From Carpediemonas membranifera BICM (taxonomy: Eukaryota > Protista > Fornicata), in contig JAHDYR010000048.1 in assembly GCA_019828565.1 (NCBI GenBank), forward strand, positions 1-64,000: DNA of 64,000 bases, read 5' to 3'. The translations under genes and the position numbers were made by a program. Every line of letters begins with the position of its first letter. Positions within the stretch are counted from its first letter, which is position 1. The notes below the pieces were generated by a model, which saw only the letters and a list, made by a program, of their open reading frames with translations, was not told the origin of the DNA and did not search any database. Below are positions 31,816 through 51,765 of this stretch, piece after piece.

Positions 31816-34800
31816 TTAGACCAAAGCTTCGCCAGCCAGGTCGACCTGCGTCTCTTCAGTCACACCTCTCACATCCAGGCCCTTGAGGTCCCACAGCTTG
31901 GCCGTCTTGTCCATTGAGCTGCTGACCAGTGTCGACCCGTCCTGGGAGAAGTCCACACGCCGCACGTTCTGTGCATGGCCGCGAAGAGTACGCATGCACT
32001 TGCCCGTGGCGACGTCCCACAGCTTGATCGTCGCGTCACGGGAGGAAGAAGCAATCATCCTTCCGTCGGGCGAGAATCTGAGTCCGCGAACGAATTGGGT
32101 GTGCGCGCCCTCCTCGAACCTCGCGAGGCAGGCCCCGGTGGCCACATCCCAGATCCGGACGAACCGCTCGTAGCCGCAAGACGCGAGAAGCGTGCTATCA
32201 GGTGAGAAAGCAACGCAGAACACGCTGCCGCCCTGTTCTTCGAGCGTCTGAATCACTGCACCGGACGCAGCGTCCCAGAGCTTGATCGTGCGGTCATCGG
32301 ACCCGGATGCGATCAGCTTGCTGTTGGGCGAGATAGCCACGCAGTTGGTCTGCTTGCCATGATCCATGCCTCTCCAGGCCATGCGGTTCCGGGCCAGATC
32401 CCAGGCGATGATGGCACCGTCACCCGAGCTTGAGGCTGCGAGTGTCTTGTCAGGAGACAGAGCGATGCCGACGATCCACTTGTTGTGGCCCACTAGCGGT
32501 TTGCCAATGAGCTCACCCGTTTCTGCGCTCCACACCTGGACAGTCTTGAGACCTCCAGTGACGAGAAGCTTGCCGTCAGGTGACGCTGCGACATCCCAGA
32601 TCTGCTCACCGGTCGGGACGTTCAGTCTGCACTGGCCGGTGGCATCCCAGATTCGAAGGGTCTGGTCCCAGCTACTCGATGCAACCGAGCCGTCGGGGAG
32701 CATGGCGACAGCAACGACGCTAGCCCAGTTCGACGCAGCGTGGCCACGATAAGTGTAGATGGACTCGTCGATCGCGTGATCGGTCGTCTTGGGCCAGGTC
32801 TGTTGATCCTCGATGGTGACGAGGGGCTTATCACCAGAGTCGAGTGTGACACCGTTGACCTGTCTTTCCACTTGATCCATGCTAAGGTCACTGGCAGTGG
32901 GCGCGGAGTCAAGCTCCACTGTCTCATATCCAAGCTTGGCAGGCAGCTCTGCGATCTGATCAGCGGATGGTGACGCGAGGTCGACTCTGAGCCAACCATC
33001 GTCGGTCTTGACAAAGACTGTCTGCTCGAATGTGCTTGGCGAGAACACGACAGCGGAGGCCTTGGCAGTGATGGAAGCGGTCAGGACTCGCGTGTTCGTG
33101 TCATCGGAGACATCCTTGACGATGCGGGTCGACCCATCGGCCACGAGGGCCACAAGCAGGGGGTGCATGGCGAAGCGTTCAGTCCCAGATGGGAAATGGA
33201 GAGAGCTGGCAAAGTCGCCGGTTGATTCAGGGAGCAGGCCCGACGCGGTCATGGCGGGCGTCGATCGGCCGACAAACATGACCTGCTGGCGACTGCCGAG
33301 CAGGCTGAAGTCGTTGTTGCTGTGAGCCCATTCGACCCAGAACGGCAAGTCGGTGAAGGAACCTCTCTGGTCGTTGCTGCCGATCGCGCCAATGTCGCTG
33401 CCGACGATCTGCCAGTCGCCCATTGTGAGTACGACGCTCTGAGCGGTGGAGACGATGCCATTAGGGATGAAGCCGTCGGGCAGGGCCATGGGGTGGAACA
33501 TGCATACGTCTGCCTCAGGCACGGACTCGTCGATCAGCCCCTTGTTGCCCAGTGAGACGGCGCCGACTGGGGTCAGGATGGCCGTCCAGTCGCGGTGGTG
33601 GTCAATCACCAGCCCGTGTCGGTGCCAGTCGCGGATGCCTGCCACGTATTCGTGCACTTCGGGACAGTGCAAGAACGCGACTCGGGCCGGCCTAGCCATC
33701 CTACGCCTCGGGTCCTGCTCGTTGAATCCGGGAGGGATCGTATCGCGACAGAAGCCGTATACGCCACTCGTTGTGACGAGCAGGATGGAGTGAGTGCCCA
33801 GACCGTGGTGCTCGAGGATCGGGGGGACGTGGACCCTCTGGTACCGGTCCACCTCGCCGAAGGTCGTGCGGAACTCGAAGAGTCGGCCCGCGTTGAACCT
33901 GTGAAGCATGGAGTGGATGTCGCCTGGGTGCTGCGGGTCGAACGACTCGTCTCTGAAGAAGCCGTTGGTCAACGCGACCTGGTTGCAGAAGTAGAACTTC
34001 TTGCAGAGGAACCACACGAGCTTGTCTGCCACTGTGTATGGGTCTCTCGTGGTCTGAGATGCCTGGGACGGGTCGGCTGAGGGGCCGTTGAGGTCCGGGT
34101 CGGCACCGGCTTCCATGAGGATGGCCCAAGCCGTTCCCTGGAGCAGGGTGTGCAGGGCGTCGGGAAGCTCCATGTTCTCGTCGAGCTCGACGTTCATGGA
34201 CAGCGGGGGGCCGTCTGTGAGGATCGAGCGGGCGCGGTCGAGGAGGGTCTGGGCCTCAGGCTTGAGCTCGGGAATGGCATCGAGCATGGCACTGAGCTCG
34301 TCGAGGTCGGCTGGTGTGGGCTCGATGACCTCCGGCTTCTGCACTGACGGCATGACCCCGCCAACGTGCCTCGAGTAGACGTGCCTCAGCAGCGTGGGGA
34401 TGTCCCCGGGGACGTCGGCCGTCACCGCCAGAGAGCGACGATACGCATCAACGAGTGCCTGCCTGCTGCCCTCCGACCCAGCGTCTACCAGGCCGACCTC
34501 CATGTCCCTGAGCCACCCGATGGCTGACTCGAGGAGTATGGCGGACTCACTGAAGTCGGGATTAGAGCCCTGGCTTCCAGAGAAGTGGCTGCCTGGGCTG
34601 CGTCCTGACTCGTCAGCTGCATCGTCATCGACGTCGGGGGCCCGTTTTGATGGCCAGTTATCGTCATCGCCATCGTAGCGTCGTGTCACAGGGCATGGCG
34701 TGTGGCGACGCAAGGCTTCACTGAGCGATGCAACCCGACCGGCGAGGGTCGATTGCAGCTCAGTGTTCTGGTCCTCGATCGCGGTGTTCGTTGTGGTTGT

Positions 34801-35868
34801 GCGCTTTGTCTTCTCGCGCTGTTTCACTTTCCGGAGTCGGCCAGCTTCAGTTTCGAACGCAGCACCGTGTAACTCGCTGCTGGGCTGCTCCAGATCGACG
34901 GGCTCCACCTCCGCAACAGGGGCATCCAATGGCGGGCACTCGACCCCCAGCTGGCCGAGGACCCAGTCTAGCGCGGCGATCTGCCCGCGGAGGTGGGAGT
35001 TGACCAGGCTGAGGTCGTAGTGTCGCTGCCGGATCACCCCAGGTGTCTTCTTGGCAGCCTCTTCGGGATCCTCACGTGTTTCAGCGGGATAAGGGACTGC
35101 TTCCATCGTGCTGCCGTCGAACCCGGAGAGTGCTCCGGAAATGTCTCTCTTGGCGTGGCCAAGGGCGACCTGGAGGTCATTGATCTCGGCCATCACGGCG
35201 TCGATCTCATCCCTCAGGATGGCGTTCTTAGCACGGTTGCGCTGCTTTGGCGTCATTCCAGAAGCATCGACGTCGACGTCGAGCTTGGATGGTAGCACAC
35301 GGTCGGTGTTCCCAGGCGCATTGCCGCGACCAAGCAGCATCCGCACATAGAGGAGCGCCTTCTGCGCGCCCTGCCGCCACTTGGCCTCCTTCATGACCTT
35401 GAACTTGTGCTCCAGGAGCGCGCCAGTCAGAAGTTCGGCCAGGTCCACCTGGATGGGAAGGGAACGCTGTGATGGCACTAATGGATAAACGACAGCAGTA
35501 ACGGTCCCATTCGTTTGCCCCGTGTTCCGCGTACCACGGGGAGGAACGTTGGCTGCGCGGTTGTGGGCCTCGTTGAGATCGTTTCCCGGGACCGGCATCG
35601 CGATTCCGGCAAACTCTTGCATTTGAATGAGTATATCGAGGAATGGCAAGCTAGCACTTTCATATGAGGCACTATGACCACCATCGTGGACAGTAGTCGG
35701 TCCAAATGGTGATACAGAAGACATCTCGTGCCCATTGTTCACCATCGGCTCGTTAGTGCCATTGTTTGCGCCGCTGGCTTGGTTGTTACCACCGGGCGCG
35801 GTCATCGACGGGTTATCGATGCTTCGGTTTTTGGTGTCTCCCGAGTTATATCGTTTACGCGTGTACAT
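31816..35868 (-). CDS. Chimeric 1350-aa protein: shared cassette module + 'WFLCKKFYF' domain + C-terminal WD40 propeller
   Basis: About seven WD40 repeats (approx. 31870-32750; ASGSDDRTIKLWD etc.); the N-terminal part equals the 958-bp cassette. Confidence 0.88.
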   Translation of the reverse strand: MYTRKRYNSGDTKNRSIDNPSMTAPGGNNQASGANNGTNEPMVNNGHEMSSVSPFGPTTVHDGGHSASYESASLPFLDILIQMQEFAGIAMPVPGNDLNEAHNRAANVPPRGTRNTGQTNGTVTAVVYPLVPSQRSLPIQVDLAELLTGALLEHKFKVMKEAKWRQGAQKALLYVRMLLGRGNAPGNTDRVLPSKLDVDVDASGMTPKQRNRAKNAILRDEIDAVMAEINDLQVALGHAKRDISGALSGFDGSTMEAVPYPAETREDPEEAAKKTPGVIRQRHYDLSLVNSHLRGQIAALDWVLGQLGVECPPLDAPVAEVEPVDLEQPSSELHGAAFETEAGRLRKVKQREKTKRTTTTNTAIEDQNTELQSTLAGRVASLSEALRRHTPCPVTRRYDGDDDNWPSKRAPDVDDDAADESGRSPGSHFSGSQGSNPDFSESAILLESAIGWLRDMEVGLVDAGSEGSRQALVDAYRRSLAVTADVPGDIPTLLRHVYSRHVGGVMPSVQKPEVIEPTPADLDELSAMLDAIPELKPEAQTLLDRARSILTDGPPLSMNVELDENMELPDALHTLLQGTAWAILMEAGADPDLNGPSADPSQASQTTRDPYTVADKLVWFLCKKFYFCNQVALTNGFFRDESFDPQHPGDIHSMLHRFNAGRLFEFRTTFGEVDRYQRVHVPPILEHHGLGTHSILLVTTSGVYGFCRDTIPPGFNEQDPRRRMARPARVAFLHCPEVHEYVAGIRDWHRHGLVIDHHRDWTAILTPVGAVSLGNKGLIDESVPEADVCMFHPMALPDGFIPNGIVSTAQSVVLTMGDWQIVGSDIGAIGSNDQRGSFTDLPFWVEWAHSNNDFSLLGSRQQVMFVGRSTPAMTASGLLPESTGDFASSLHFPSGTERFAMHPLLVALVADGSTRIVKDVSDDTNTRVLTASITAKASAVVFSPSTFEQTVFVKTDDGWLRVDLASPSADQIAELPAKLGYETVELDSAPTASDLSMDQVERQVNGVTLDSGDKPLVTIEDQQTWPKTTDHAIDESIYTYRGHAASNWASVVAVAMLPDGSVASSSWDQTLRIWDATGQCRLNVPTGEQIWDVAASPDGKLLVTGGLKTVQVWSAETGELIGKPLVGHNKWIVGIALSPDKTLAASSSGDGAIIAWDLARNRMAWRGMDHGKQTNCVAISPNSKLIASGSDDRTIKLWDAASGAVIQTLEEQGGSVFCVAFSPDSTLLASCGYERFVRIWDVATGACLARFEEGAHTQFVRGLRFSPDGRMIASSSRDATIKLWDVATGKCMRTLRGHAQNVRRVDFSQDGSTLVSSSMDKTAKLWDLKGLDVRGVTEETQVDLAGEALV
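34458..35415. repeat. 958-bp coding cassette, copy 2
   Basis: Matches 27127-28084. Confidence 0.96.
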
Positions 35869-36690: not shown

Positions 36691-38605
36691 TCATGCTCTA
36701 ACATCCAGAGTCCTCCGACAACCCTGGCACGTGATTTGCCGTCTAGTCGCGCTGACCTTCTTGTTCTCGTACTCACAATGGGGGCAAGCGACCGTCCGTT
36801 GGGAATCCAAGTCTTGCGGGAGGTCGACTGTCTGGCGTGGCGCTATCTCACACGGGCGGTTGTAGTGGCGGAGGTGTTCCGCCTGATCGGCCATGCGGCG
36901 AAGGCACTTGTGGCAGAACTGTTGACCACAGAAAGGACATGTGGAGATCTTGCAACTTGCTAGGCTCCCTTCGCGGGATGCGAGCTCGCCACACGCGGGA
37001 CAGCGGCGATTGACGGGGACGTCCACAGCAGTGCCTCCACCGAGCGTGACCAGCTCGCAGTTCTGGAGGTATTCTCTCTGCTCAAGCAGTAATTTGATCT
37101 CGGCATGCGTGAAGCGGTGCTCGTCTCTTCTGATGACATAAAAGTTTGCGGCCGCTCCATCTTCCACAGCAGGAACGCAGTCCGCGAAGAGCTGGCGCAT
37201 GACCTCGGGCTCCTCGATGCGGGGGATGAGCGAGCTGCCGTCGCATGCAGTGTACACGCGGTACTCCTCGTGGAACCTGACCTCTGATGCACCAGGTTGG
37301 GGGAGCTTGGCACCGAACATGTGGAAGGCGAAGCGGCGGCGCGTCTCGTCGTCCTCGAGCACGGCACGGAGGGCGTCCTGCACACCGTGGCTGTCCGCGG
37401 GGAAGCGCAGCACTGCCATGACGGCGTCGACCGTGAGCGGGTTGGGGCGCACGAGCAGGGCCCGCAGCTGGGCGGCGGTCAGCGCGGCAATCATCTCGCT
37501 GAACTGCGTCCTCGCGGTCATTCCGTTACGAATGAGTTGTATCCTGTCAGTAAAGCGGCTCAGCACCTCGCTCCGGTAGGCATTGAGGTCGCCCTCAAAG
37601 CCATCGAGCGGGCACTTTGCCCTGGCTTCCTCTATGGAAGTGTTAAGCGCCCGGTCGACGAGCGGCATCAGCGCAGCTAAGTCGATGCGGCCACCAGCGA
37701 GCGCGACGAGCCAAGTGTTGCTGACCATGTCGGCCGGAAGACGGATCCCGTCGAGCAGCATGAGCTGCAGCACGCGGCCGAGCCCCAGCAGGACGGGGCG
37801 CAGGTCGTCGATGGGATAGTCGAGGGCGTCAGGCATGAAGACCAGCGTGCCCTCAGTCACTCGGAAGACCGGCACGGAGAATCTCATGGTGCCGATGGAC
37901 TGGGCAATTGAGGTCTGCGGCAGCTTGACGACCAGGTCGGGCAGGGCCTTCGCGGACTCCTTGCCAGACAGTGTCGCGGGTACCGCTAGAAGGTCCTCCT
38001 CGCAAGCACCGATGTTAGTCAGAGTGTTGCTGAGGTTGTCGTCGAGGGTGAGGTCAAGAGGGTCCTCCGCAAACATCTTCAGCCGGGTGCGGTCGATGGC
38101 GTCGACAAAGGCGTGGGCCATCGCGAACCTGCTGCTCGCCGCGTTGAGGTCGACCTCGGGGTCCAGCTCGTTGGCAGAGGCGGCGAAGAGGCCGTCGGCC
38201 AGCGCGCGGCGGACGGACCAGCGGGCCTCGAGGTGGGTGGCGAGCATACCGCAGAGCACCTCGCGTAGGGCTTGGGGGACTGCGACGGTGGCGAGCAGGG
38301 CGTCGCAAAGCTTGTCTTCGTTGACGGTTGAGAACTCTTTGAGAGTTCCCATGAGGAGAGCGAGCAGCTGCTGGCAGAAGGCGGGGTAGTCCGGCGCCAT
38401 GGCCCCGAGCATCGTCAGGCCCGCGTGGTAGACGTCAGCGGCCTGCTGCTCGCGGTGGCTCAGCTTCTTCCCGGAATTGCGGGCGGCGATCTCCTCGGGC
38501 GCGCTGAAGGCGAGCGTGCCGATGTTGACTCCGGTCGCAGTCATGTTCACGGCGTCCATGTTCGAGGCCGTCTCGAAGTCGACGAGCACGGGGTGGCCCT
38601 CGCGC

Positions 38606-38638
<33 letters not shown>

Positions 38639-41600
38639 CAGATGCCCGCGCTGTGCAGGTCGTGGATCGCGGTGAGCAGGCCGTGGAGCAGTCTGCGCTG
38701 AGTGTCGGGCGAGTCGGCTGGGGCGTCGCGCAGGTGGTTTTCAAGGCGCTCCATGACGACCGAGCAGGTCTGCTCAGCGAGGTTGATGAGGACGAAGTGC
38801 AGCTTTGGCACTGCGGGACTGTGCGCCATGCGCGACAGGATACCCGCCTCGCGGTCGCAAAGCTTCCGCTGGTGCTCGTTGTCGAGCTTGAAGGTCTTGC
38901 CGAAGTAGGTCTGGCCGTCGCGGGTCACGATCTGGCACAGCGCTCTGTTCTCGCTGACGGTCGACTCGACGGCGAAGTCGGACATCGACAGGTCGACGAG
39001 CATCTCGGGGAGGTCCATGAGGTGGGCCAGCCCCATCTCGCGCAACTCGGCGAAGAGGCTGGCCGACGGCGCGGTGAGCTCCTTCAACTCAGGACAGAGC
39101 CGGACGAGCTGCGGCGTGCGGCGGGCCAGGGCGGTCTCCATGGCCTCGAGCTGGATCTGGACTGCCTCGAGCTTCTCCTCATTAGCAGCTGCCAGAGCAA
39201 TCTCCCGACGACTGTTGTTTCTGGCGATATCCTCCTGCAGCCACTGAGCGTTTTGCCTCAGCTGCTGGTAATCGCCCAAATCGTGGAAATCGCGGGCGAT
39301 GCTGTCGGCCTTGGCGAACCCCGAAAGATGGCTATTGGCCCCTGCCACAAGGCCACGGAGCTGAAGGATCTTGAGTTGGTCGGGGGGCGTAAAGTCGGCA
39401 GTTTTAGACCGCTGACTGGCCCAAGACCACGCTTGACGTACAGAAGGATGAAGGAAGGCGCGGAGGTTGGCGAATCGGTCGGTCCCGACCTTCTGCTTGG
39501 GGACTTCGGCGAGCAGGGTGCGCATATCCTCAAGGGAGGGAAGCACAGGGTTCTCCATCTCAGCGACCCTGGCGAGCAATGCAGCGGCCGTCTCGGCGTC
39601 TTCAGCGACGCGCTTCTCCAGCAACGCGACACCAGCCTCGGCCTGGGCGATGATCAGACTATAATCAGCAGTCCTAGTCTCCGGCAGACGTCGAGCAGAC
39701 CCAAGCCTGCCGCTGAGCACCTCAGGTGAGGGTACAGCAGTGTTATCGTGAACAGGGACGGAGAATGAAAGCAGGGGGTGGTCCTTGAGCATCAAGTTCA
39801 CCTCGATGGCCTGCTTCAATCTCAGTTCAGCGCGGAGTGAGGCAATCTCACTCTTCATCGTGTGATAAATAGTGGAGTTTGCCCGGGCAAGCACTTCGCA
39901 GACCTTGCTGCTGTGTCTATCGGTCACAAACAGCCCGCCCTTCATGGTGACAGTCGAGCTGGTCGGTCTGAACTCAACAGCAACCGCGGAAGGCATTGAG
40001 GTGCTCGATGCGACGTGGGTCAGGGCCAGCTCGAGGTGTGACAGAAAAGCGACCGAGAGTTGGACGTCAGCGCCGACCTCGCGAGCACAGAAGAGGTGTA
40101 TCCGCTTGGCCTCTTGGAGCTTATTGTACTTGAGGAGGATCTTCTTGATCTCGACAATCTCTGGCCCCACCATCATGTGATGAGAATCCATGCGGACAGT
40201 AGCTCTGGGTGCATCGAGCTGGACGCTGAATGACCGTGGGGCGACGCTTGAGCTCTCCAAATGCTCGAGCAGCTTTGTTAGACTGGGAAGATCGGCGTGA
40301 GTGACGCAGAGGTCTGTTTCCTCAGTGATCGGCTCGGCGCAGATCTCGGACAGCCGCCTGCTGAGCTGCGCACGGTTGAGCGGGTTGAGCGCGGTCTGCA
40401 CCTCGGCTTTCTCAGGAGACGACTGGAAGCCGTTGCGGTCATAGCTGATGGTGCATTCGGGGCGGGTCAGCCTCATCGCGAATGAGGTGGGCAAGGTCTC
40501 CCGCTGCAGCAGGAGGCCAGCCACGGTCTTCAGGTCGCCAATCGTGAGCGGCGCGTGCTCGCCCAGGCTGATCTCATTGTCGGTCGAGATGGCGTCGAGG
40601 TGGGCGGTCAGGAAGCTGAAGCCGCTGACAACATAATCGACAACATCGCTGGGTGGGGCGACCTCGAAGCCGGTCGGGCCGAGGGTGACGGTTGTGGCTG
40701 GGTCAGCCAGCCGCATCTCGAAGGAGCGGGGGGCAACCTTCCGTTCAGTCAGTATGGCGAGGGCCACGTTGAGGTCGCCAATCGTGAGCGGCGCGTGCTC
40801 GCCCAGGCTGATCTCATTGTCGGTCGAGATGGCGTCGAGGTGGGCGGTCAGGAAGCTGAAGCCGCTGACAACATAATCGACAACATCGCTGGGTGGGGCG
40901 ACCTCGAAGCCGGTCGGGCCGAGGGTGACGGTGGCGGCTGGGTCGTCGAGCTGAACCTCGAATGAGCGGGGCGCGACCCTAGAGGCCTCGACGTGTGCGA
41001 GGAGCTTCTTCAGCGCGGGAAGGTCGGCGTGGGTGACTCTGATCTCGACATCGCCGCTAATGTCACCAGCACAGATACGAGAGACCTCGTTGCTGAGGCG
41101 CTGATGGTTGAGGGCGTTAAGAAGAGGCTGTACTTCAGCACTGGCTGGCACACAGCCGAAGCGGTTGTTGTTCATTCTCACGGTGCATTCGGGGTGGGCC
41201 ATCCTCATCTCGAATGAGCGGGGCAGGCCCGTGGCGAGGATGTGGATGACGACCCGTGCCAGGTCGGCGAGGTAGAGGGGCGAGTCGTCAGACGGCAGGC
41301 GGATGTCGGCAGCGAGTGTGGGTTGGGCGCAGACCTCCTTGATCTCTGGCGAGTGCTTGATATGCCACTGCTTGGCGGTCTTGTCGTTTGAACCAGACAG
41401 CAGGGTCGATCCGTGCGTCCCAAAAGCGAGGCAGCGGACACTAAGGGCATGGCCGACAAGGGTCTTCAGACACTCGCCGCTGCGTGTGCTCCAGACCTTG
41501 ATGGCTCCGTCGTTGGACCCTGAGACAGCGGTGTCGCCGTCTGGTGCAATAGAGAGGCACCTTACTGTCTTCCTGTGGCCGCTGAGAGTCGCTCTGGGCT

Positions 41601-43656
41601 GCCAGTCCTCCGTGTTCCAGAGAATGACGGTATCACCAGCACTGGACGCGAGCAGATTGCCATCTGATGAGAAGCTCAGGCAGTGCACTCCAAAAGCTCC
41701 CCTCAGAGTGTGCTGCAGGTTGCCCGTCTTCGCGTCCCAGACTCTAATTGCCTTGTCCTTGTCACCCGATCCTGTGACAACCACGCTGCTGTCCGGAGAG
41801 ATAGCTACCGCCCGTACACTATCAGCATGCCTAGAGAGCGTCAGCTTGCACTTGCCGGTCCACTGAATATCCCAGACCATGGCCTTCTTGTCCGTAGAGC
41901 CTGTGACGAGGGTGTTATTGTCATATGAGAACGCCAAGCATGTGACAGCCCCGGTATGGCCAGAGAGTTCGAGCGGCTTCCCCAACTCAGTGTGGGAAGA
42001 CAGGCTTTGACCCGTGTTGGAGTTCCACAGTCGAACCGGACCTTCACCCCCAGAGGCGATGGTCGACCCGTCGCTGGATGCGGCTAGGCAGAATACCTGA
42101 CCGTCATGGGTCATTGTTCGCTCAACTTCACAAGACGGTGTCCAGACGGTGAGCGTGCGATCGGTCGACCCTGTGACCATGCGGTTGTCTGGTAGCATCA
42201 CCACTCCCGTGACGTTGTTGGTGTGGGCATGGATGGACGCGATACAGTCTCGGCGGGCCTTGGCCCACGTGGCGAGGATGGCGTCGAGCTCGTTGCTGTG
42301 CTCGTTGGTGACTAGAGCCCCGAACCTGAGCCTGACGGTGGCGTTGGTATCGGTAAGCCTCATGGTGAAAGCGCTGGGAAGGTCGTCTTGTACCACGAGG
42401 CGGTCGAGGACGCGGGTGAGGTCGGCGACGGTGCCCTCGAGGCGGACGATGGCCGCGGCCGGGACAGGTTGGGCGAGGGTCTGGTCGAGGGCGGTGAGCT
42501 CGGGAGAGCGACCAAGTGACCACTGCTTGGCGGTGTTGTCGTCAGATCCGGAGATCAGTGTGGCAGTGTATGGCAGTGCCCCGTCGGTGAAAGCGAGACA
42601 CCGCACACTCGACGTATGCCCCTCGATCGTTGCAGTACAGGCGCCATTGCCCACGCTCCAGAGCTTGACGTTCTTGTCCTCTGAGCTTGAGGCGAGAGTC
42701 GAGTCATCGGGGGAGAAGCCCACGGCAAACACGGCCTTGGTATGCCCGCGGAGAGTGCTGAGGCAGACCCAAGTGTTGCAGTCCCACACGCGGATATCAC
42801 AGTCGCGGGACCCGGAAGCAAGGAGTGAACCGTCATTGGAGAACACGACACATGAGATTTCCTTGCCATGGCCGACCAGTGTGTGTTCGAGTCGACCTGA
42901 CCTGATATCCCAGATCTTGAGGGCCTTATCGTGGTATCCTATAGCCACAGTGGTGTCGTTGGGTGAAAGGGCAATGGACCTGGCGCACTCGTTGTTTGTG
43001 GCAATCACGAGTGGCTCCTGCACTTCCCTGGCGCCCATCACATGATGGATCACCCAGAGCTTGCTGCTGGATGCAAGGATAAGCTTTTCATTGCGTGTGA
43101 AAGCCATTCCGATGATTCTCGAGCCAACCCGCCGGATGGTATCAACGAGGTGACCCGACTCAGCGTCCCATAGCTTGATCGCACGGTCGGTACCCGCAGT
43201 CGCTACAATCATGCCGTCCCATGACACAGCGAAGGATGAGACGTTGCAGCCGTGACTTAGGCACTTATGGCTGCCGTCGGGGAGGCTGAGGACGACGGGG
43301 TTGTTGGCCGAGTCAAGTCTCGAGACGACAGTCCCGTCGGGCATGATGTCCATGCCTGTAACAGCGTCGCTGTGCCCATGCAAGACCTTGAGGCATCTAG
43401 GGACCGAGTTCCAGGCGTCCAGCAGACTGTCGACCAGACCATGGTGTGCGGTGGCACTGAAGAGGCCCTGGGTCATGGTGACAGTGAGGTTGGGCTCAGT
43501 CAGCCTCATGCTGAACTCGCATGGAAGCTCAGCAAGCGTCGAGAGGTGGTCGACGACGTGGGCGAGGTCGTCGAACGTGAGGGGCGAGGCGCCAATGGGG
43601 ACGAGGTGAAGCTTGTCCTCTGGGGCGAAGACGCGCGTCGTGGCGTCTCTGATCAT
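36691..43656 (-). CDS. 2321-aa multidomain protein: two WD40 propellers, eight ~75-80-aa novel repeats, coiled coil, Ser/Thr kinase, HECT-like domain, IBR/Rcat-like finger, zinc ribbon
   Basis: WD40 GH...WD repeats; HRDLKPEN, DFE, GTLAFSAPE; LGRVLQLMLLDG, LTAAQLRALL, RRRFAFHMFG, VYTACDGSSLIP; RRCPACG...SCKISTCPFCGQQFCHKC; CPHC...CQGC. Confidence 0.88.
40532..40932. repeat. Intragenic direct repeat, period 240 nt (161 nt exact: 40532-40692 = 40772-40932)
   Basis: Read directly; duplicates TVTLGPTGFEVAPPSDVVDY...PLTIGDL. Confidence 0.95.
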
Positions 43657-44113
43657 GTGATCTACTGCTCTGCACTCGCTGCTGCGTGAGATTCTCGGGG
43701 AGGACGCACCATTGCTCAGGTATACTGCGTAAGCGCTCTTGAACTCGCCGCGGGCTGCATCTCTGCACCAACGGGATAGGGAACGTACCAGCTGCGTAAA
43801 TGCACATGATATAACTTACTTTCTGCATCGTCGTTGCTGCATTCGTTCTTTGCTTGTCCAAGTCTGATATGGTCTCGGTCACGATGTTGAGGGCATCGTG
43901 ACAAACTGTAAATAATGGCCAAACTCACAGATAGAGTGCAGATAGTATGTGCAAGTCTAAATGCGCATGAATGCCCTCGAAATACGGCTTGCCTCGGCAG
44001 CTGAATAGTGTTCTTTGTATTACCACAAAAAACTGTCAGTGCCCAGGGAAAGTGCGATATTCGTCCTCTAACATAGCATAGAAGTGCCGTCAATACTCCA
44101 CAGCCGGCCAATC

Positions 44114-45142
44114 ATGGCCAACCGGCTGCGGACTTCCGGACCCTCCATCGCCACGAGTCAAGAGCAAATGTCGCGGCATTCTGGCGAAAGACGTCGGGAT
44201 TCTGTCTCATCCACACGTTCTAGCTCTACAGCGCCGGGAATTGGGATTCAAATGATCGATTCTCCAGCGGAAGTGCCACTTTTGGCAAAAGCGGTAGCTC
44301 CTGGAAGCTACGGGGCGTATTCAAACGATGTTACAAGCGAGAAGGGGAAACGCAAGCACAGTCGTACCAGGAAAGCATCACTTGTCCCAGATATTGCGAC
44401 ACCTGTGCTCATTGGCAATGAACGAAGCAATCTAGTCAACGGGAGTCGCCGCAAGCACCGTCCAAGCGTGCTGTACACACTTGGATGCTTTGCCACGCTC
44501 CTTCTTTCTCTCTTTGCAGCTGTGGCTCTTACCGTCCTGATTTACATTCTTGCTGCTTTCTTCTCGAACATCGGCATGAGGGAATGGGATGTTTTCGGCA
44601 TCCATAATGACGATGGCAAGGAATACGATGCTGCAGTAGTGTTAGGCTTTGTCCTTGACGGCCAGGACAGCATCCAGCCCGAGCTAGAGGCCCGCCTTCA
44701 AACCGTGCTCGACCTTTATCTCTCCGGCCGGATTGTCGGTGAGATCATCCTCTCTGGCGGCAAACCAAGCACGTCCCACGAGAAAGCTGAGGCCGAGGTG
44801 ATGGGCGAGTGGCTTGAGGTCCGCGGCGTCCCCTCTTCCAGGCTGGTGCAAGAGGGGCAGAGCCGAACGACGGCAGAGAACGCCAAGTACTCCATTCCCA
44901 TCCTCGTCAACTCAAGCTACAAGAGAGTAGTGATCGTTACTAACACTTTCCACCAGTATCGCTCCTTCTGGCTCTTTCACGGCCAGTGCGACGGGGCCGC
45001 TTTCTGCCAGGCGAGGTTCAGGATGGCCGACGCCCGGAAGCTTGAGGGCTCTATTTCACGAAGCAGGCACCAGTATGACTTCTTTCGGGAGATCCTGGCG
45101 ATGGGGCTGGCCATCCTTAAGGGAAACGTCTCTTTTTGGTAG
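44114..45142 (+). CDS. Membrane-anchored DUF218 (YdcF/ElyC/SanA-like) protein
   Basis: TM helix, then AAVVLG, IILSGG, EAEVM, E.QSRTTAENA, IVTNTFHQYRS, REILA. Confidence 0.88.
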   Translation: MANRLRTSGPSIATSQEQMSRHSGERRRDSVSSTRSSSTAPGIGIQMIDSPAEVPLLAKAVAPGSYGAYSNDVTSEKGKRKHSRTRKASLVPDIATPVLIGNERSNLVNGSRRKHRPSVLYTLGCFATLLLSLFAAVALTVLIYILAAFFSNIGMREWDVFGIHNDDGKEYDAAVVLGFVLDGQDSIQPELEARLQTVLDLYLSGRIVGEIILSGGKPSTSHEKAEAEVMGEWLEVRGVPSSRLVQEGQSRTTAENAKYSIPILVNSSYKRVVIVTNTFHQYRSFWLFHGQCDGAAFCQARFRMADARKLEGSISRSRHQYDFFREILAMGLAILKGNVSFW

Positions 45143-45231: not shown

Positions 45232-48200
45232 CTATTCCTTGACGAAGTTCCATACCTCAATCTCATCTGGGGTAAACACCGGTGTGCCTGCCAGCAGCGT
45301 GCCTGCCTCCTCGCTGGTCGGCTCAAAGACGCCGAGGCTGTAGCTCTGCTCCAGCCGACTCGAGCAGTTGGTAAAGTCATCCGCGAACACGAGATCGCCC
45401 TGGGGCCCGCCGAACGAGATATATGACCCTCCCCGGGCATCGTTGGACACTAGCGCCTGCATGGGCGTGACCTTGTGATAAATAACGGCCATCTGCTCAC
45501 GGTCAGTGCCGGGCGGGCAGAGGGCGAGCTTGCTGGGGATGAACACATCCTCGGTGAGGGAGAAGAGGCAGCACTTGGCTGACCCCGTCTTAACACCGTT
45601 TGACCGCCACGGGGCAGAGGCGAAACCACCAAAGATGTGCTCACCCACTCTAGCGAGGATGACCGTTGACCCGTTGTCGTCGACCACAGCATGCATGGCG
45701 CCCATATCGCGTCCGTTCTTCCAGTCTGCCCACAGCAGTTTAGTGCTGGGGACTCTCGAGGCGATAGGGAGGGAGAAGTACATAACCTGCTTGGATTCGT
45801 CGCTGGATAAGATGTGAGAGTCGGCAAAGGGGACAGCCGTGAGTGTGACCTGGTTGGCCTCCATCATGGACCGTGTTTCCTCAGCCAGACGGCGAAGGGA
45901 GTACTGCCGGAAGACCTCAGAGAGGTCAGCCCGTTGCTGCTGCTGGTTGGCAGGATCCCGGGCTGTGGCACGAGCTCCAGCAGTCTCTCTGACCGCCTGG
46001 TCGGGGGATGGCGAGGGCGAGGGTGAGGCGTGGCTCATGGCCCCGCTCTGGGGCTGGTTCGTGTGGGGGGCGGACTGGCTGTCAGCCTCACGGAGGGAGG
46101 AGACTGAAGGGCCCCTGGACCGGCGGAGGCGGGTCTCGGAGGCGTCACGGTGCATGTCTGGGCGGGAGGGCTTGTCCGCGGCGGCCATTGGCTCTTGGAC
46201 AGGCTCGGGGCGGGTGGGCTCGGCGATCATGCCCATGTTGTTGTTGAATGCCTGCTCTACAGGCTCGGGGGGCACAGCCTCGTCCCTCTCGGGCTCTTGC
46301 TGCTCTCTCGCCATAGGGGCCGGGCGCTGTTGGCTCGACCACATAGGGTTGGTCTCGGGCTGGGCAGGTTGAGTGGGTTGGGCGGTGAAGCTGGGCGTGT
46401 CGTAGCCCATGTCGCCTTCAGGGAAGGAGGAGGCGGCTGGCTCGACCGGGATGGAGGACTGTTGGCGTTTGTTCTTCATCGTCTCTGCCCACAAGTCGCC
46501 GTTGCGGCGGACGATAGGGGAAGCGGTTTCAGACGCACCTGCGCCGCGAGCAATGACTTTCTCTGCCGGGTGGTTCGGCCCCATCGCCTTGAGCGCGCTG
46601 AACAGCACGCGCTGCTTCTTCTTGCCCTGCTGCTGATCCTGCGCGTTCATCTGATTGAACGTGTTCGGGAGTTCGGTGGGCGTGGGGTCAAAGGGTCTGG
46701 CGGGCGCCTGGGGTGTGGGCTCCTTGGCCTTGCCCTTGTTCCGCTGGAAGAGTGTGGCTCTGAAAGCAGAAGCGCTGGGGGCGGGCTTGAAGTCATCGAA
46801 CCCAAAGGCGTCGCCGTCCTCCAGACCAGGCTGGGGCTGGGGGTCGTAGATGTCCTGGGACACTGTCGGCTGGGCCCACTGCTGCTCGCCGAACTGACCC
46901 ACGCCGCTGTGGGGCTGGTCAAACAGGCCCGCGGGGGTGAAGTTACCCTCGGTGACGTCCATGTCGCCTGTAAGCCGGAGGTCAGCCTCTACGTCGATGT
47001 CGCCCTTGACGATGAGCTTATCGTGCAGGATAGCCCTCATCTGTTGATGACGGCGCCATAGATGGAGGAAGCGGACGGGAGTGAGGTGCTCTCGTTGGGA
47101 GGACAGGAACTGATCGAGCCAGTGGATCTGGGACAACTGGCGCCGCATCTCGATCTCCTCGCCAAGTAGTGTGTTGAGCTTGCTCTGCGTCTTCTCCTGT
47201 AGACGGTATAGGATCTGCTGCAGCTGGCGGTAGATCATCTCCTCGACAGATGCAGAGTTCTTGTACACATCGCGGAGTCTCTCGTCGATCTCCTTAAGGT
47301 GCTCCCTGATGGCATCCCTGCGGGCGTCGAGGAGGGGATCCTGGTCTCCCGAGGCGTTCATCGCCTTCTCGTATGCTTGGTGCACCGACACTAGACGATG
47401 CGTGGCAGACTCACCGGCGCTGTGGTTGCCCTCCATCTTGCACTTAACGCACACAGGCTCCTGGCACGTGGGGCAGAAGTACTCGACGGTCATGTCTGGG
47501 TGGTGGGGGCAAGTTCCGAAGAACAGAGGGTGCTCCTTGATCGGGACACGGACATGGCGGGCCACAAGCTTGTTCGCAGCGTGTACTTCGCGGTCGCAGG
47601 CCGGGCAGAGCTTGGCGCTGTCGGCAGCGCAGTAGACGGTGGCGTTGGCCTCTCCACATGCATCGCAGAGGTACTGCTCGCCCTGGGGGGCCTCGGGGTC
47701 GTACTCGAACTGCACTAGGAAGCACGGCATGATCCTGGCGCCGTCAGCGAGCATATACTTGTGACGGTAGAACTGTACATGCCCTGGGTCGTCCTCCGTA
47801 AAAAAGTTGACGGATGTGGCGCGGTCGGCTTCCATCTCCTTCAAGCGGGCGGCGACTGAGATGCTGTTCTCGCCGTCACAGACGTAGACGGAGTCGTATC
47901 CATCGGGGATTGTGAACTTTTCGTTCGAGGGGTCGTTCTTCTCGGTCTCGACGCAGTAGGGCTTGCCTGTCGCTACCTGGCAGAGAAGGGCCTCATAGCG
48001 GTTGTTCTTAGCGCGCTGGGAGAGGTCCATGAGACCTGTGGTGATCGGGAGCCCCTTCTCGCCAATCTTGAAGCCACGCTGGCAAATGTCGTGGACGGTG
48101 TTCTCATTGTCCAACGTGAGGGTGTTAATCCAGCTTTCGACAATCATGGAGTCCGCAGATAGTCTCTCGAACTGCGCTGCGACGTGTGGGTTAACAACAT

Positions 48201-48321
48201 TCCAAATATTCACAATGCGGGCCTTTGATGAACCCGTGGAGAGATGAAGCAGATACTCTATACGCTGCGCGTCATCACTATCTTCGAGGATCGGCAGGCT
48301 ATGCTCTATCGCCGTGCTCAT
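45232..48321 (-). CDS. Tandem B-box + coiled-coil protein with C-terminal TLDc domain and possible degenerate PARP-like N-terminus
   Basis: CDAC...ATVYCAADSAKLCPACDREVH; CPHH...YFCPTCQEPVCVKC; TLDc-type IFGGFASAPW...LFSL...EIEVW. Confidence 0.85.
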   Translation of the reverse strand: MSTAIEHSLPILEDSDDAQRIEYLLHLSTGSSKARIVNIWNVVNPHVAAQFERLSADSMIVESWINTLTLDNENTVHDICQRGFKIGEKGLPITTGLMDLSQRAKNNRYEALLCQVATGKPYCVETEKNDPSNEKFTIPDGYDSVYVCDGENSISVAARLKEMEADRATSVNFFTEDDPGHVQFYRHKYMLADGARIMPCFLVQFEYDPEAPQGEQYLCDACGEANATVYCAADSAKLCPACDREVHAANKLVARHVRVPIKEHPLFFGTCPHHPDMTVEYFCPTCQEPVCVKCKMEGNHSAGESATHRLVSVHQAYEKAMNASGDQDPLLDARRDAIREHLKEIDERLRDVYKNSASVEEMIYRQLQQILYRLQEKTQSKLNTLLGEEIEMRRQLSQIHWLDQFLSSQREHLTPVRFLHLWRRHQQMRAILHDKLIVKGDIDVEADLRLTGDMDVTEGNFTPAGLFDQPHSGVGQFGEQQWAQPTVSQDIYDPQPQPGLEDGDAFGFDDFKPAPSASAFRATLFQRNKGKAKEPTPQAPARPFDPTPTELPNTFNQMNAQDQQQGKKKQRVLFSALKAMGPNHPAEKVIARGAGASETASPIVRRNGDLWAETMKNKRQQSSIPVEPAASSFPEGDMGYDTPSFTAQPTQPAQPETNPMWSSQQRPAPMAREQQEPERDEAVPPEPVEQAFNNNMGMIAEPTRPEPVQEPMAAADKPSRPDMHRDASETRLRRSRGPSVSSLREADSQSAPHTNQPQSGAMSHASPSPSPSPDQAVRETAGARATARDPANQQQQRADLSEVFRQYSLRRLAEETRSMMEANQVTLTAVPFADSHILSSDESKQVMYFSLPIASRVPSTKLLWADWKNGRDMGAMHAVVDDNGSTVILARVGEHIFGGFASAPWRSNGVKTGSAKCCLFSLTEDVFIPSKLALCPPGTDREQMAVIYHKVTPMQALVSNDARGGSYISFGGPQGDLVFADDFTNCSSRLEQSYSLGVFEPTSEEAGTLLAGTPVFTPDEIEVWNFVKE

Positions 48322-49255: not shown

Positions 49256-49410
49256 CACGACCCAGCCTTTCGAAATGCGCTAAATTTCGACACTAGTCTC
49301 GCCGCCCGCCGCCCGGACTCAGTCAGCGACCCGCCCCATGCCCCGAGCCTTCATTTCGCGGGCTTCTTTTTTTCTTGCAAAAGATAAGCGATCACAAAAG
49401 CGGACGACGA
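49256..49410. promoter_or_regulatory. Putative bidirectional promoter between EFG1 and SPB1
   Basis: 155 bp between divergent start codons; GC-rich core and T-tract. Positional inference only. Confidence 0.45.
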
Positions 49411-51765
49411 ATGGGAGCTGGTGATAAGGATCGCCATCAGAAGACCGGTAAGGGACGTCTTGATCACTTCTATTACCTCGCCAAGCAGCGTGGTCTTAGA
49501 TCGAGAGCTGCTTTCAAGATTGAGCAGCTTGGCAAGGACTTCAACCTTTTCGAGGACTGTAACGTCATTCTCGATCTCTGCGCTGCTCCCGGTGGCTGGA
49601 CGCAGATCGCTGCGAAGGAGATGCCCAAAGGCGGCCTCGTTGTTGCCGTGGATCTCGACCCCATTCCCACGATTGATCCCTCCACAGTGAACGCCACCAT
49701 CAAGACCTACGTGACCGATATCACCACGGAGCACTGCCGTAGCACTGTCCGCAAGGCTGTTAAGGAGCACTTCCCCGCCACGTCGAACCCCGTGGTCGAC
49801 GTTGTTCTTCACGATGGTGCCCCCAACATGGGTGCTGACTGGAACCTGGATGCTTTCCAGCAGAACATGCTTGTTGTCCATGCCATGCGTCTTGCCGCTG
49901 ACATGCTGAAGGTCGGGGGGACTTTCGTGACCAAGGTCTTCAGATCTCGCCACTACAACAACCTCCTCGCCCTCATGAACGAGCTGTTCGAGGATGTACA
50001 GGCCCGTACACCTAAGGCCACCCGTGAGACCTCTGCCGAGACCTTCATCGTCTGCCGCCGCTTCAACATGAAGCGCTACGCCAAGATTGACAAGGAGTTC
50101 TTCAACTTCGACAACATCTTCGTCGACCAGGACGCCAACGAGCCCGTCCGTCTCAAGGACATCGTCTCCTCCAAGCCCAACCAGGACGGCTACTCATACG
50201 TCCGCGGCGGCGTCCTCCTTGAGAAGAAGATCGGCCTGACAGAGTATCTCTCCACTGACCTCCCGGCAGACCTCCTCAACGACGCCAACATCATCGAAAT
50301 CGACCCTGAGACCGACGCTAAGGCCCTCGAAGTCCTCTCTGAGCTCAAGATCTGGCCTAGAGGCATGAAGAGCATCACTGACCTCCAGGACGTCGCGGCC
50401 GACCTTAAAGTGCAGTCTAAGGACACGATCAAGAGCCTGCTCAACTGGCAGCGGAAGATCAGATTCCGTTTCCTCAGCGCCATGGCGCCCCTGCTTGAGA
50501 GTGGCAGCGAGGAGGAGGGTGAGGGTAGCGAGAGTGCGTCTGGTTCAGAGAACGAAGACGACGCCCTGGACAGCGGCTCGAGCTCGGAGTCAGAGTCGGA
50601 TACCGATGAAGAGCTGGACGACGAGATCAGGCGCCAGAAGAGGCGTGAGAAGGCTAAGCTTCGTCGCAGTGCACGCCGTAAGAAGGCCCGTCTCTCTCGA
50701 ATGGTGATGGGCAACGTCGACCCCCTCATTGCCCTCGAGACTGCTGAGGGCGAGGCCCGCACACTCTTCACCCAGAAGATTCTCACTGGTGAAGTTGAGA
50801 TCGACGACGAGGAGCCCGAGCCCACCAAGATTGAGGTCCGCGACAACTCCGAGTCTGACGCCAGTGACGCCGAGAAGGATGAGTTCGCCGACAAGATGAA
50901 GTCGACCCTCGTCAACAGGCCCAAGGTTTCCCTGCCTACCTCCAACTGGTGGCAGAACGAGATATTCTCCGAGGATGAGGACGAGAGCAGTGCCAGTGAG
51001 GCCAGCGACGCCGAGCTCGACAAGGAGATGCCCAAACGCCAGGCCAAGAAGACAGTCGAAGAGTGGTCATCAGATGATGAATCCAACTCCGACACTTACA
51101 ACTCCAGCAACCAGAGCGGGTCCGACAACGACGATGAGGAGCTGGACTCGGACGACGGCTGGACGACCGACGACTCGGCCCGAATGGCCCAGAAGCTCGC
51201 CATCGGTGCGAAGATGATGCGGAAGAAGCAGCGGGAGGAGATGGAGGACGCCGCATACAACCGGTACAACTTCGACGACGAGGGGGTCGACATGCCAGAG
51301 TGGTTTGCCAAGGAGGACGCCTTCTACAATAGGCCGATGATGCCTGTTACCAAGGAGGAGGTCGAGGCCTTCCGGGCACGGCGTAAGCAGATCACAGAAC
51401 GCCCTACGAAGAAGCTGCTGGAGTTCAAGGCTCGTCAGATGCAGCGTAAGAAGCGCGAGGAGGCCAAGATCCTGGCCAAGGCTGCGCATCTCGCTGATCA
51501 GGACATTCCCGCCACGGAGAAGCTCAGAGAGGCGGAGAAGCTCGGCAGGCAGAGGTCTAAGCTCGACAAGAAGATCAGACAGAAGCCCAAGGCCAAGCGG
51601 CTCGATAAGAGGATGAAGGCTGACGGCGCGGGCCACGCCCTTGCTGGCGGGTCGGGTAAGAAGGCGCTGAGGAAGAACGGTGTCCTCTCGATGAAGCGGA
51701 AGCAGGGTAAGGCTGCGGGCAAGACGAAGCCCCGGACTAGGAAGGGGAGGTTCGGCCGGAGATAG
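49411..51765 (+). CDS. SPB1: rRNA 2'-O-methyltransferase Spb1/FTSJ3
   Basis: KTGKGRLDHFYYLAK..G.RSRAAFK, LDLCAAPGGW, VLHDGAPN, FVTKVFRS, D.AYNRY..DD...PEWF, DKRMKAD. Confidence 0.96.
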   Translation: MGAGDKDRHQKTGKGRLDHFYYLAKQRGLRSRAAFKIEQLGKDFNLFEDCNVILDLCAAPGGWTQIAAKEMPKGGLVVAVDLDPIPTIDPSTVNATIKTYVTDITTEHCRSTVRKAVKEHFPATSNPVVDVVLHDGAPNMGADWNLDAFQQNMLVVHAMRLAADMLKVGGTFVTKVFRSRHYNNLLALMNELFEDVQARTPKATRETSAETFIVCRRFNMKRYAKIDKEFFNFDNIFVDQDANEPVRLKDIVSSKPNQDGYSYVRGGVLLEKKIGLTEYLSTDLPADLLNDANIIEIDPETDAKALEVLSELKIWPRGMKSITDLQDVAADLKVQSKDTIKSLLNWQRKIRFRFLSAMAPLLESGSEEEGEGSESASGSENEDDALDSGSSSESESDTDEELDDEIRRQKRREKAKLRRSARRKKARLSRMVMGNVDPLIALETAEGEARTLFTQKILTGEVEIDDEEPEPTKIEVRDNSESDASDAEKDEFADKMKSTLVNRPKVSLPTSNWWQNEIFSEDEDESSASEASDAELDKEMPKRQAKKTVEEWSSDDESNSDTYNSSNQSGSDNDDEELDSDDGWTTDDSARMAQKLAIGAKMMRKKQREEMEDAAYNRYNFDDEGVDMPEWFAKEDAFYNRPMMPVTKEEVEAFRARRKQITERPTKKLLEFKARQMQRKKREEAKILAKAAHLADQDIPATEKLREAEKLGRQRSKLDKKIRQKPKAKRLDKRMKADGAGHALAGGSGKKALRKNGVLSMKRKQGKAAGKTKPRTRKGRFGRR

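Follow-up and report, generated by a model that had tools for sequence, protein, structure and literature searches.

The present analysis concerns a window of 64,000 nucleotides (positions 1 to 64,000 of contig JAHDYR010000048.1, assembly GCA_019828565.1) from Carpediemonas membranifera BICM, a free-living metamonad and bacteria-eating protist, and within it the gene at 36691-43656 on the minus strand, to which all gene features given below also belong. Translation of the window revealed one open reading frame of 2321 amino acids (aa) with zero internal stops and no indication of introns, which is represented in the protein collection by entry P0001. In the front part of the encoded protein, two WD40 propellers are interspersed with an ~80-aa domain in eight copies; a probably helical linker, a kinase, a HECT fold, a zinc finger of the Rcat type and half of an IBR follow in this order. 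The protein belongs to a Carpediemonas-expanded family of WD40-repeat-kinase-HECT-Rcat proteins. An initial annotation had proposed a WD40-WD40-kinase-HECT-RBR-like architecture. All the motifs that it quoted were found in place (HRDLKPEN at aa1674, DFE at aa1693, the HECT-like segment at aa1959-2145 and the Rcat-like one at aa2217-2251), which confirms the underlying observation as real; the domains it listed, apart from the terminal zinc ribbon, also stood, while the list was incomplete, the eight ~80-aa repeats having been overlooked.

The HECT assignment depends on structure. No HECT domain was detected in P0001 by sequence, either with Pfam (PF00632), with phmmer against the PDB or with hmmsearch against the PDB using the family profile, and only two of the 29 aligned family members matched PF00632 weakly (best E 0.0045). 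The AlphaFold (AF2) model of residues 1830-2321, with a predicted local distance difference test (pLDDT) score of 84, retrieved nothing but HECT ligases among the 50 best-ranked Foldseek rows, with E values down to 1.9e-8, as the initial annotation had anticipated for such a check of the C-terminal part. In the structural comparison with VIA, HECT domains filled rows 1-19 and the next row was HOIL-1 RING2, aligned on the finger region; UBE3C gave a Z of 13.2 with a root-mean-square deviation (rmsd) of 12.3 over 261 aligned residues, the lobes being flexible, and the isolated C-lobe of HUWE1 a Z of 7.9 with an rmsd of 2.9 over 95 residues. The family profile also aligned with the four ordinary HECTs of the same genome (hhalign P 91%, E 1e-6). 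Taken together, the modeled structure contains a two-lobed, divergent and internal HECT domain at 37165-38160 (~aa1833-2164), so that the HECT order and fold first proposed for about 37150-37950 held and only its start had to be moved, to near 38160. A viral origin of this domain was considered and rejected, since the only matches were to ordinary giant-virus HECTs at 8-12% identity.

Within the C-lobe, Cys2138 (37243-37245) takes the position of the HECT catalytic loop, in agreement with the active-site role first assigned to it: the loop that contains it connects two strands, and a conserved Pro comes seven residues after it, an arrangement shared by three of the genome's four ordinary HECTs. 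This register rests on sequence spacing and model secondary structure, and hhalign set it two columns off. HECT has been described as a C-terminal domain (PMC3673628). Here, ~157 residues follow it, there is no free C-terminal tail and no Phe stands four residues from the end; in E6AP, the tail is required for chain formation and dispensable for the thioester (PMC6463701).

What follows the HECT domain is a finger of the Rcat type with a preceding helix (36841-37107, ~aa2184-2272), in which Cys2235 (36952-36954) sits at the Rcat catalytic position. Over the C-terminal 152 aa, PF01485 (IBR) reached 24.6 bits, slightly above its cut-off of 24.3, and the Rcat region matched HOIL-1 RING2 at a VIA Z of 4.8, which bears out the IBR/Rcat pattern with a catalytically placed Cys recognized at the outset. 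Among outside matches, those closest to this first finger were Rcat domains of small proteins of the RBR type. Ahead of the Rcat finger, neither a RING-type Cys pattern nor a Pfam match to RING1 was found, and the HECT domain occupies the place of RING1; according to a 2014 review, isolated BRcat or Rcat domains without RING1 were not known (PMC3940038). The term RBR-like therefore fits the Rcat-type finger and not a complete RBR, as RING1 is missing, the IBR is truncated and the usual Rcat His is replaced by Ile.

The protein ends in the first half of an IBR/BRcat with one zinc site (36694-36825), and over its final 44 residues it shares 50% identity with the beginning of the complete IBR that the paralogue L026 carries. 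An independent terminal zinc ribbon, as annotated initially, was hence rejected in favor of a first IBR half, which in relatives is followed by the rest of this domain and by another Rcat; no remnant of the missing IBR-Rcat tail and no unspliced intron was found downstream of the stop. Because a complete IBR and a Cys-x-His second Rcat follow in five near-identical copies from contig C26, of which two are in long intact frames, and in P0014 of a second assembly, GCA_002919055.1, kinase-HECT-Rcat-IBR-Rcat was probably the older form, within whose IBR the present gene, now ~60 residues shorter at the C-terminus, and most of its close paralogues stop. In both assemblies, the second Rcat (seen in L026, L029, L031, L032 and P0014) is canonical in its Cys-x-His motif, and the protein ends ahead of the second zinc site.

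The C-terminal 492 aa matched 75 places in the genome, comprising ~10 close copies that are intact, five distant copies and numerous others that are frameshifted or fragmentary, which supplies the paralogue count proposed with the initial annotation and, judged from the sequences, depicts a fast-evolving gene family under birth-and-death. In homologue searches with limits on length and candidates, the kinase-HECT-Rcat unit was found only in this genome and in GCA_002919055.1, a relative (probably C. frisia) whose housekeeping protein is 71% identical and whose GC content is ~58%. The unit itself is variably extended, since kinase-HECT is followed by RhoGEF in some paralogues and HECT-Rcat by a PARP-like domain in another. 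In L037 (P0008) and L040, the RhoGEF domain (E 3e-26 and 1.5e-13) stands after a HECT fold without Cys at the catalytic position. P0018 of the second assembly carries the PARP-like domain (E 0.02) after HECT-Rcat, and L034 (G000:C26:713156-717709), a frame of 1518 aa, a microbial-type PARG catalytic domain (E 1e-6) N-terminal of the kinase; a link of the family to ADP-ribose signaling is possible. Among the remaining candidates, P0012 showed a weak Ras-family match at residues 1-98, P0026 combines a chromodomain region with a HECT-like C-lobe fragment and may represent a merger of a gene model with a retroelement, and P0024 and P0029 were discarded as relatives, being unrelated chance matches.

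Comparison across the family revealed that the HECT Cys was kept in all ten aligned members that have the Rcat Cys, two of them from GCA_002919055.1, and that no Cys occupied the HECT position in the six members that lost Rcat, exchanged it for RhoGEF or lost the Rcat Cys. The largely joint retention or loss of the two cysteines hints at a coupling between them, as would be expected if ubiquitin passed from one to the other. It is also conceivable that a single cysteine is active, either with HECT working alone while the fingers recruit substrate or ubiquitin, or with HECT docking the ubiquitin-conjugating enzyme (E2) in the stead of RING1 and ubiquitin going directly to the Rcat Cys. Each of the known mechanisms, HECT and RBR, needs only one Cys, and IBR and Rcat share a common fold and may be non-catalytic (PMC3940038), yet such a reading fails to explain the joint retention and loss of the two residues and appears improbable to us.

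Upstream of the HECT domain, a Ser/Thr-type protein kinase spans 38179-39006 (Pkinase, E 7e-20, aa1579-1821). As first annotated, it has HRDLKPEN, DFE in place of DFG and no Gly-rich loop, the last two traits being common to the close paralogues. The residues that characterize eukaryotic protein kinases are all present, namely the β3 Lys (K1587), the αC Glu (E1603), HRD with its Asn, the metal-binding Asp (D1693) and APE, and K1587, E1603, HRDLKPEN and D1693 are invariant in 11 close copies, in which the kinase has a mean ratio of nonsynonymous to synonymous substitution rates (dN/dS) of 0.42. The nearest solved kinase in a PDB search was CaMKK1 (E 2.6e-11), which is no close relative. From these residues, the kinase is probably catalytically active. 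It is joined to the front part of the protein by a linker (39007-39819, ~aa1280-1550) that matched no family and is probably helical or coiled coil.

The two WD40 propellers recognized initially were recovered by Pfam as 13 stretches of PF00400 in two blocks, which delimit propeller 1 at 42511-43380 (~aa93-382) and propeller 2 at 41347-42231 (~aa476-770). Among paralogues, their mean dN/dS of ~0.6-0.7 compares with 0.31-0.46 in the kinase, HECT and Rcat domains. We further compared 21 hot-spot positions of the top face (R1-2, R1 and D-1; PMC3419727) in seven single-propeller paralogues, which are other than alleles of this gene: the proportion of nonsynonymous differences (pN) was 0.57 at these sites vs 0.15 elsewhere (permutation p 5e-5), and the domain-wide proportion of synonymous differences (pS) was lower, at 0.27. 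This suggests positive selection on the ligand face of the paralogues, a suggestion short of proof because the sites are surface-exposed and pS is likewise raised at the top-face codons. A repeat domain diversified at its ligand face, as in NLR/STAND receptors, is thus seen in the paralogues, and this hypervariability backs the sensor role that the initial annotation gave to the propellers. In fungi, WD repeats of the HET-E type are hypervariable at the ligand face, exchange parts between members and are combined with varied effector domains (PMC4986451).

The ~80-aa domains flank and trail the propellers, with copy 1 at 43381-43620 (aa13-92), copy 2 at 42232-42462 (aa399-475) and copies 3-8, six in tandem, at 39847-41316 (aa781-1270), the predicted secondary structure being β-α-β-β-β-α. 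The AF2 model of the domain is confident (pLDDT 90), and neither its fold nor its family was matched in Pfam, the PDB or the Atlas (best VIA Z 4.3, best Foldseek E 0.48); a likeness to FliK, with an Atlas TM of 0.56 to part of FliK only, was not accepted as a fold match. The analysis thus brings to light an abundant domain for which no structural match was found, and which occurs at no fewer than 150 places genome-wide, at least by our count, many of them on contig C5, whose repeat-bearing genes were mostly sampled through five proteins. The same repeat-WD40 front end is also joined to ankyrin plus a TKL kinase (P0040-P0042) and to a triple CbxX/CfxQ-type AAA ATPase (P0043), and P0039 is a further member of the repeat/WD40 family with an ankyrin output.

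Within the tandem array, a recent internal duplication (40529-40978) comprises two 210-bp copies, 94% identical and spaced 240 bp. Because repeat copies 4-6 are 83-94% identical to the ankyrin/TKL-kinase subfamily while the kinase, HECT and Rcat domains are 69-87% identical to P0002, the gene is a recent mosaic of two subfamilies. Such an origin, the absence of the 60 C-terminal residues that the complete form has and the many frameshifted or fragmentary copies would fit a decaying or near-neutral chimera in a duplicating family, of which the members ending in IBR and canonical Rcat would be the functional ones. The transcript evidence would also fit. Several pieces of the gene were matched exactly by contigs of a probable RNA run, each covering only part of the gene and the type of run being a guess; one contig over 36960-37322 connects the codon of the HECT Cys with the start of Rcat, and no joints at splice sites were seen, so that transcript support for the gene is thin and piecewise. 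The chimera is nevertheless very unlikely in our view, given a frame of 7 kb that has remained open, a dN/dS of 0.28-0.50 against paralogues in the enzymatic domains and at least eight other copies that end near the same point of the IBR with catalytic residues intact.

The genes around this locus are for the most part ordinary, with a DUF218 protein at 44084-45142 (plus strand), a B-box plus TLDc protein at 45232-48321 (minus strand) and an Spb1-type rRNA methyltransferase at 49375-51765 (plus strand). The downstream neighbor at 31816-35868 (minus strand) codes for a protein of 1350 aa in which a WD40 propeller at the C-terminus follows ~990 residues without a Pfam match.

We propose that the protein is an intracellular, immune-type receptor and enzyme in one, that the top faces of its WD40 propellers bind a variable ligand, presumably foreign or stress-derived, and that the ~80-aa repeats may act as spacers or interaction modules traveling with WD40 as a swappable front end. 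The kinase would then switch on the C-terminal HECT-Rcat unit, in which HECT, at the place of RING1, would load ubiquitin on Cys2138 and, having no free tail for discharge to lysine, may pass it to Cys2235 of Rcat for modification of the target. A HECT-to-Rcat relay of this kind would predict the observed state, with HECT at the place of RING1, no tail and the HECT Cys kept alongside the Rcat Cys. The receptor part of this proposal is likely, and some ligase activity is predicted with slightly better than even confidence. The statement as a whole, an immune-type sensor joined to a kinase and a cysteine-based ubiquitin ligase, stands a little short of an even chance. A true two-cysteine relay from Cys2138 to Cys2235 is doubtful, and it is rather unlikely that the family constitutes a new class of transthiolating ubiquitin ligase (E3), in which HECT replaces RING1 and relays to Rcat, possibly to the second Rcat, gated by the in-chain kinase and the diversifying WD40 in a protist immune receptor.

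Several observations indeed count against the proposal, in addition to the thin transcript support and the raised pS at top-face codons. For the receptor, no NACHT, NB-ARC or other NTPase domain was matched by Pfam in any part of the 2321-aa protein, so that the NOD module of STAND proteins is missing. For the coupling of the cysteines, L037 has a Cys three positions away from the HECT catalytic position, and the tree needs only three to four changes, few independent events and too weak a signal to rule against a single origin. For the ligase, the gene has lost the canonical second Rcat, and the residue two after the Cys of the first Rcat (Rcat1) is Ile here and Met, Ile or Leu in relatives, never the usual His; the His-less Rcat of HOIL-1, which has Trp at that position, is active (PMC9527308). 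The E2-binding subdomain of the HECT N-lobe (37522-37683) is shortened to 53 aa, 23-32 residues fewer than usual, its β-hairpin missing, and the stretch measures 51-55 aa across the measured family members vs 76-85 in ordinary HECTs. We take this stretch to be the one that holds the E2-docking β-hairpin, and because the subdomain is short, ordinary E2 loading is doubtful.

This truncation speaks most strongly for a pseudo-ligase, in which HECT would be a non-catalytic scaffold, the fingers would bind ubiquitin or partners and the kinase would be the sole enzyme, making the protein a sensor-kinase. The degenerate catalytic loop and the His-less Rcat1 point the same way, as do the distant paralogues that hold a HECT fold without Cys and with RhoGEF behind it, and a divergent HECT can be dead, as in G2E3 (PMC3673628). 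Against this stands the retention of Cys2138 while adjacent residues vary, extending to GCA_002919055.1 at ~25% identity. Rcat1, moreover, has the lowest dN/dS in the close paralogues (0.31), with HECT at a mean of 0.43-0.46, and both cysteines are invariant in the 11 close copies. We thus find a pseudo-ligase unlikely and retain the cysteine-based ligase behind a sensor as the preferred reading.

In comparison with known systems, the protein shares with HECT E3s (E6AP, NEDD4 and HUWE1) the two-lobed fold and the loop Cys of the C-lobe, and differs from them in that its HECT is internal, lacks the Phe tail and the E2-binding β-hairpin, escapes detection by Pfam and precedes Rcat/IBR fingers. 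Kinase plus divergent HECT in one chain is known from the GL-Bikonta proteins of Naegleria and Ectocarpus (class IV), which are the closest in style; the same survey of HECTs nowhere mentions IBR (PMC3673628), and a description of HECT followed by Rcat/IBR was not found in the open-access literature, in keeping with the first impression that the architecture was unlike any described protein. With RBR E3s (Parkin, HHARI, HOIP and HOIL-1), it has in common the Rcat fold and Cys position, to which the complete relatives add IBR and a Cys-x-His Rcat, whereas the order HECT-Rcat-IBR(-Rcat), the lack of RING1 and the lack of the Rcat1 His set it apart; in sequence, the closest of the RBR type are the small proteins P0023 and P0027-P0032. 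The RING-Cys-Relay (RCR) ligase MYCBP2 likewise has two cysteines in one chain that could relay ubiquitin (PMC9527308), but its folds, RING plus tandem-cysteine, are unrelated and were not matched among the Foldseek and VIA structural hits, and the relay is proven for MYCBP2 and hypothesized for the Carpediemonas protein. On the sensor side, the family resembles the fungal NLR-like NWD/HET-E receptors in the hypervariability of the WD40 ligand face, the exchange of parts and the varied outputs, and differs in having no NACHT/NB-ARC, in the N-terminal position of WD40 and in an output of kinase and ubiquitin-ligase folds. The family indicates that a free-living metamonad may have a repertoire of NLR-like receptors that do without a NOD. 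HECT is described as C-terminal and Rcat as always paired with RING1; because the Carpediemonas family departs from each of these rules and has retained the two cysteines, it offers a natural test of chaining HECT and RBR chemistry. The 2321-aa protein is neither a canonical HECT, nor an RBR, nor an NLR and, if functional, would work like a transthiolating E3 placed behind an NLR-like sensor.

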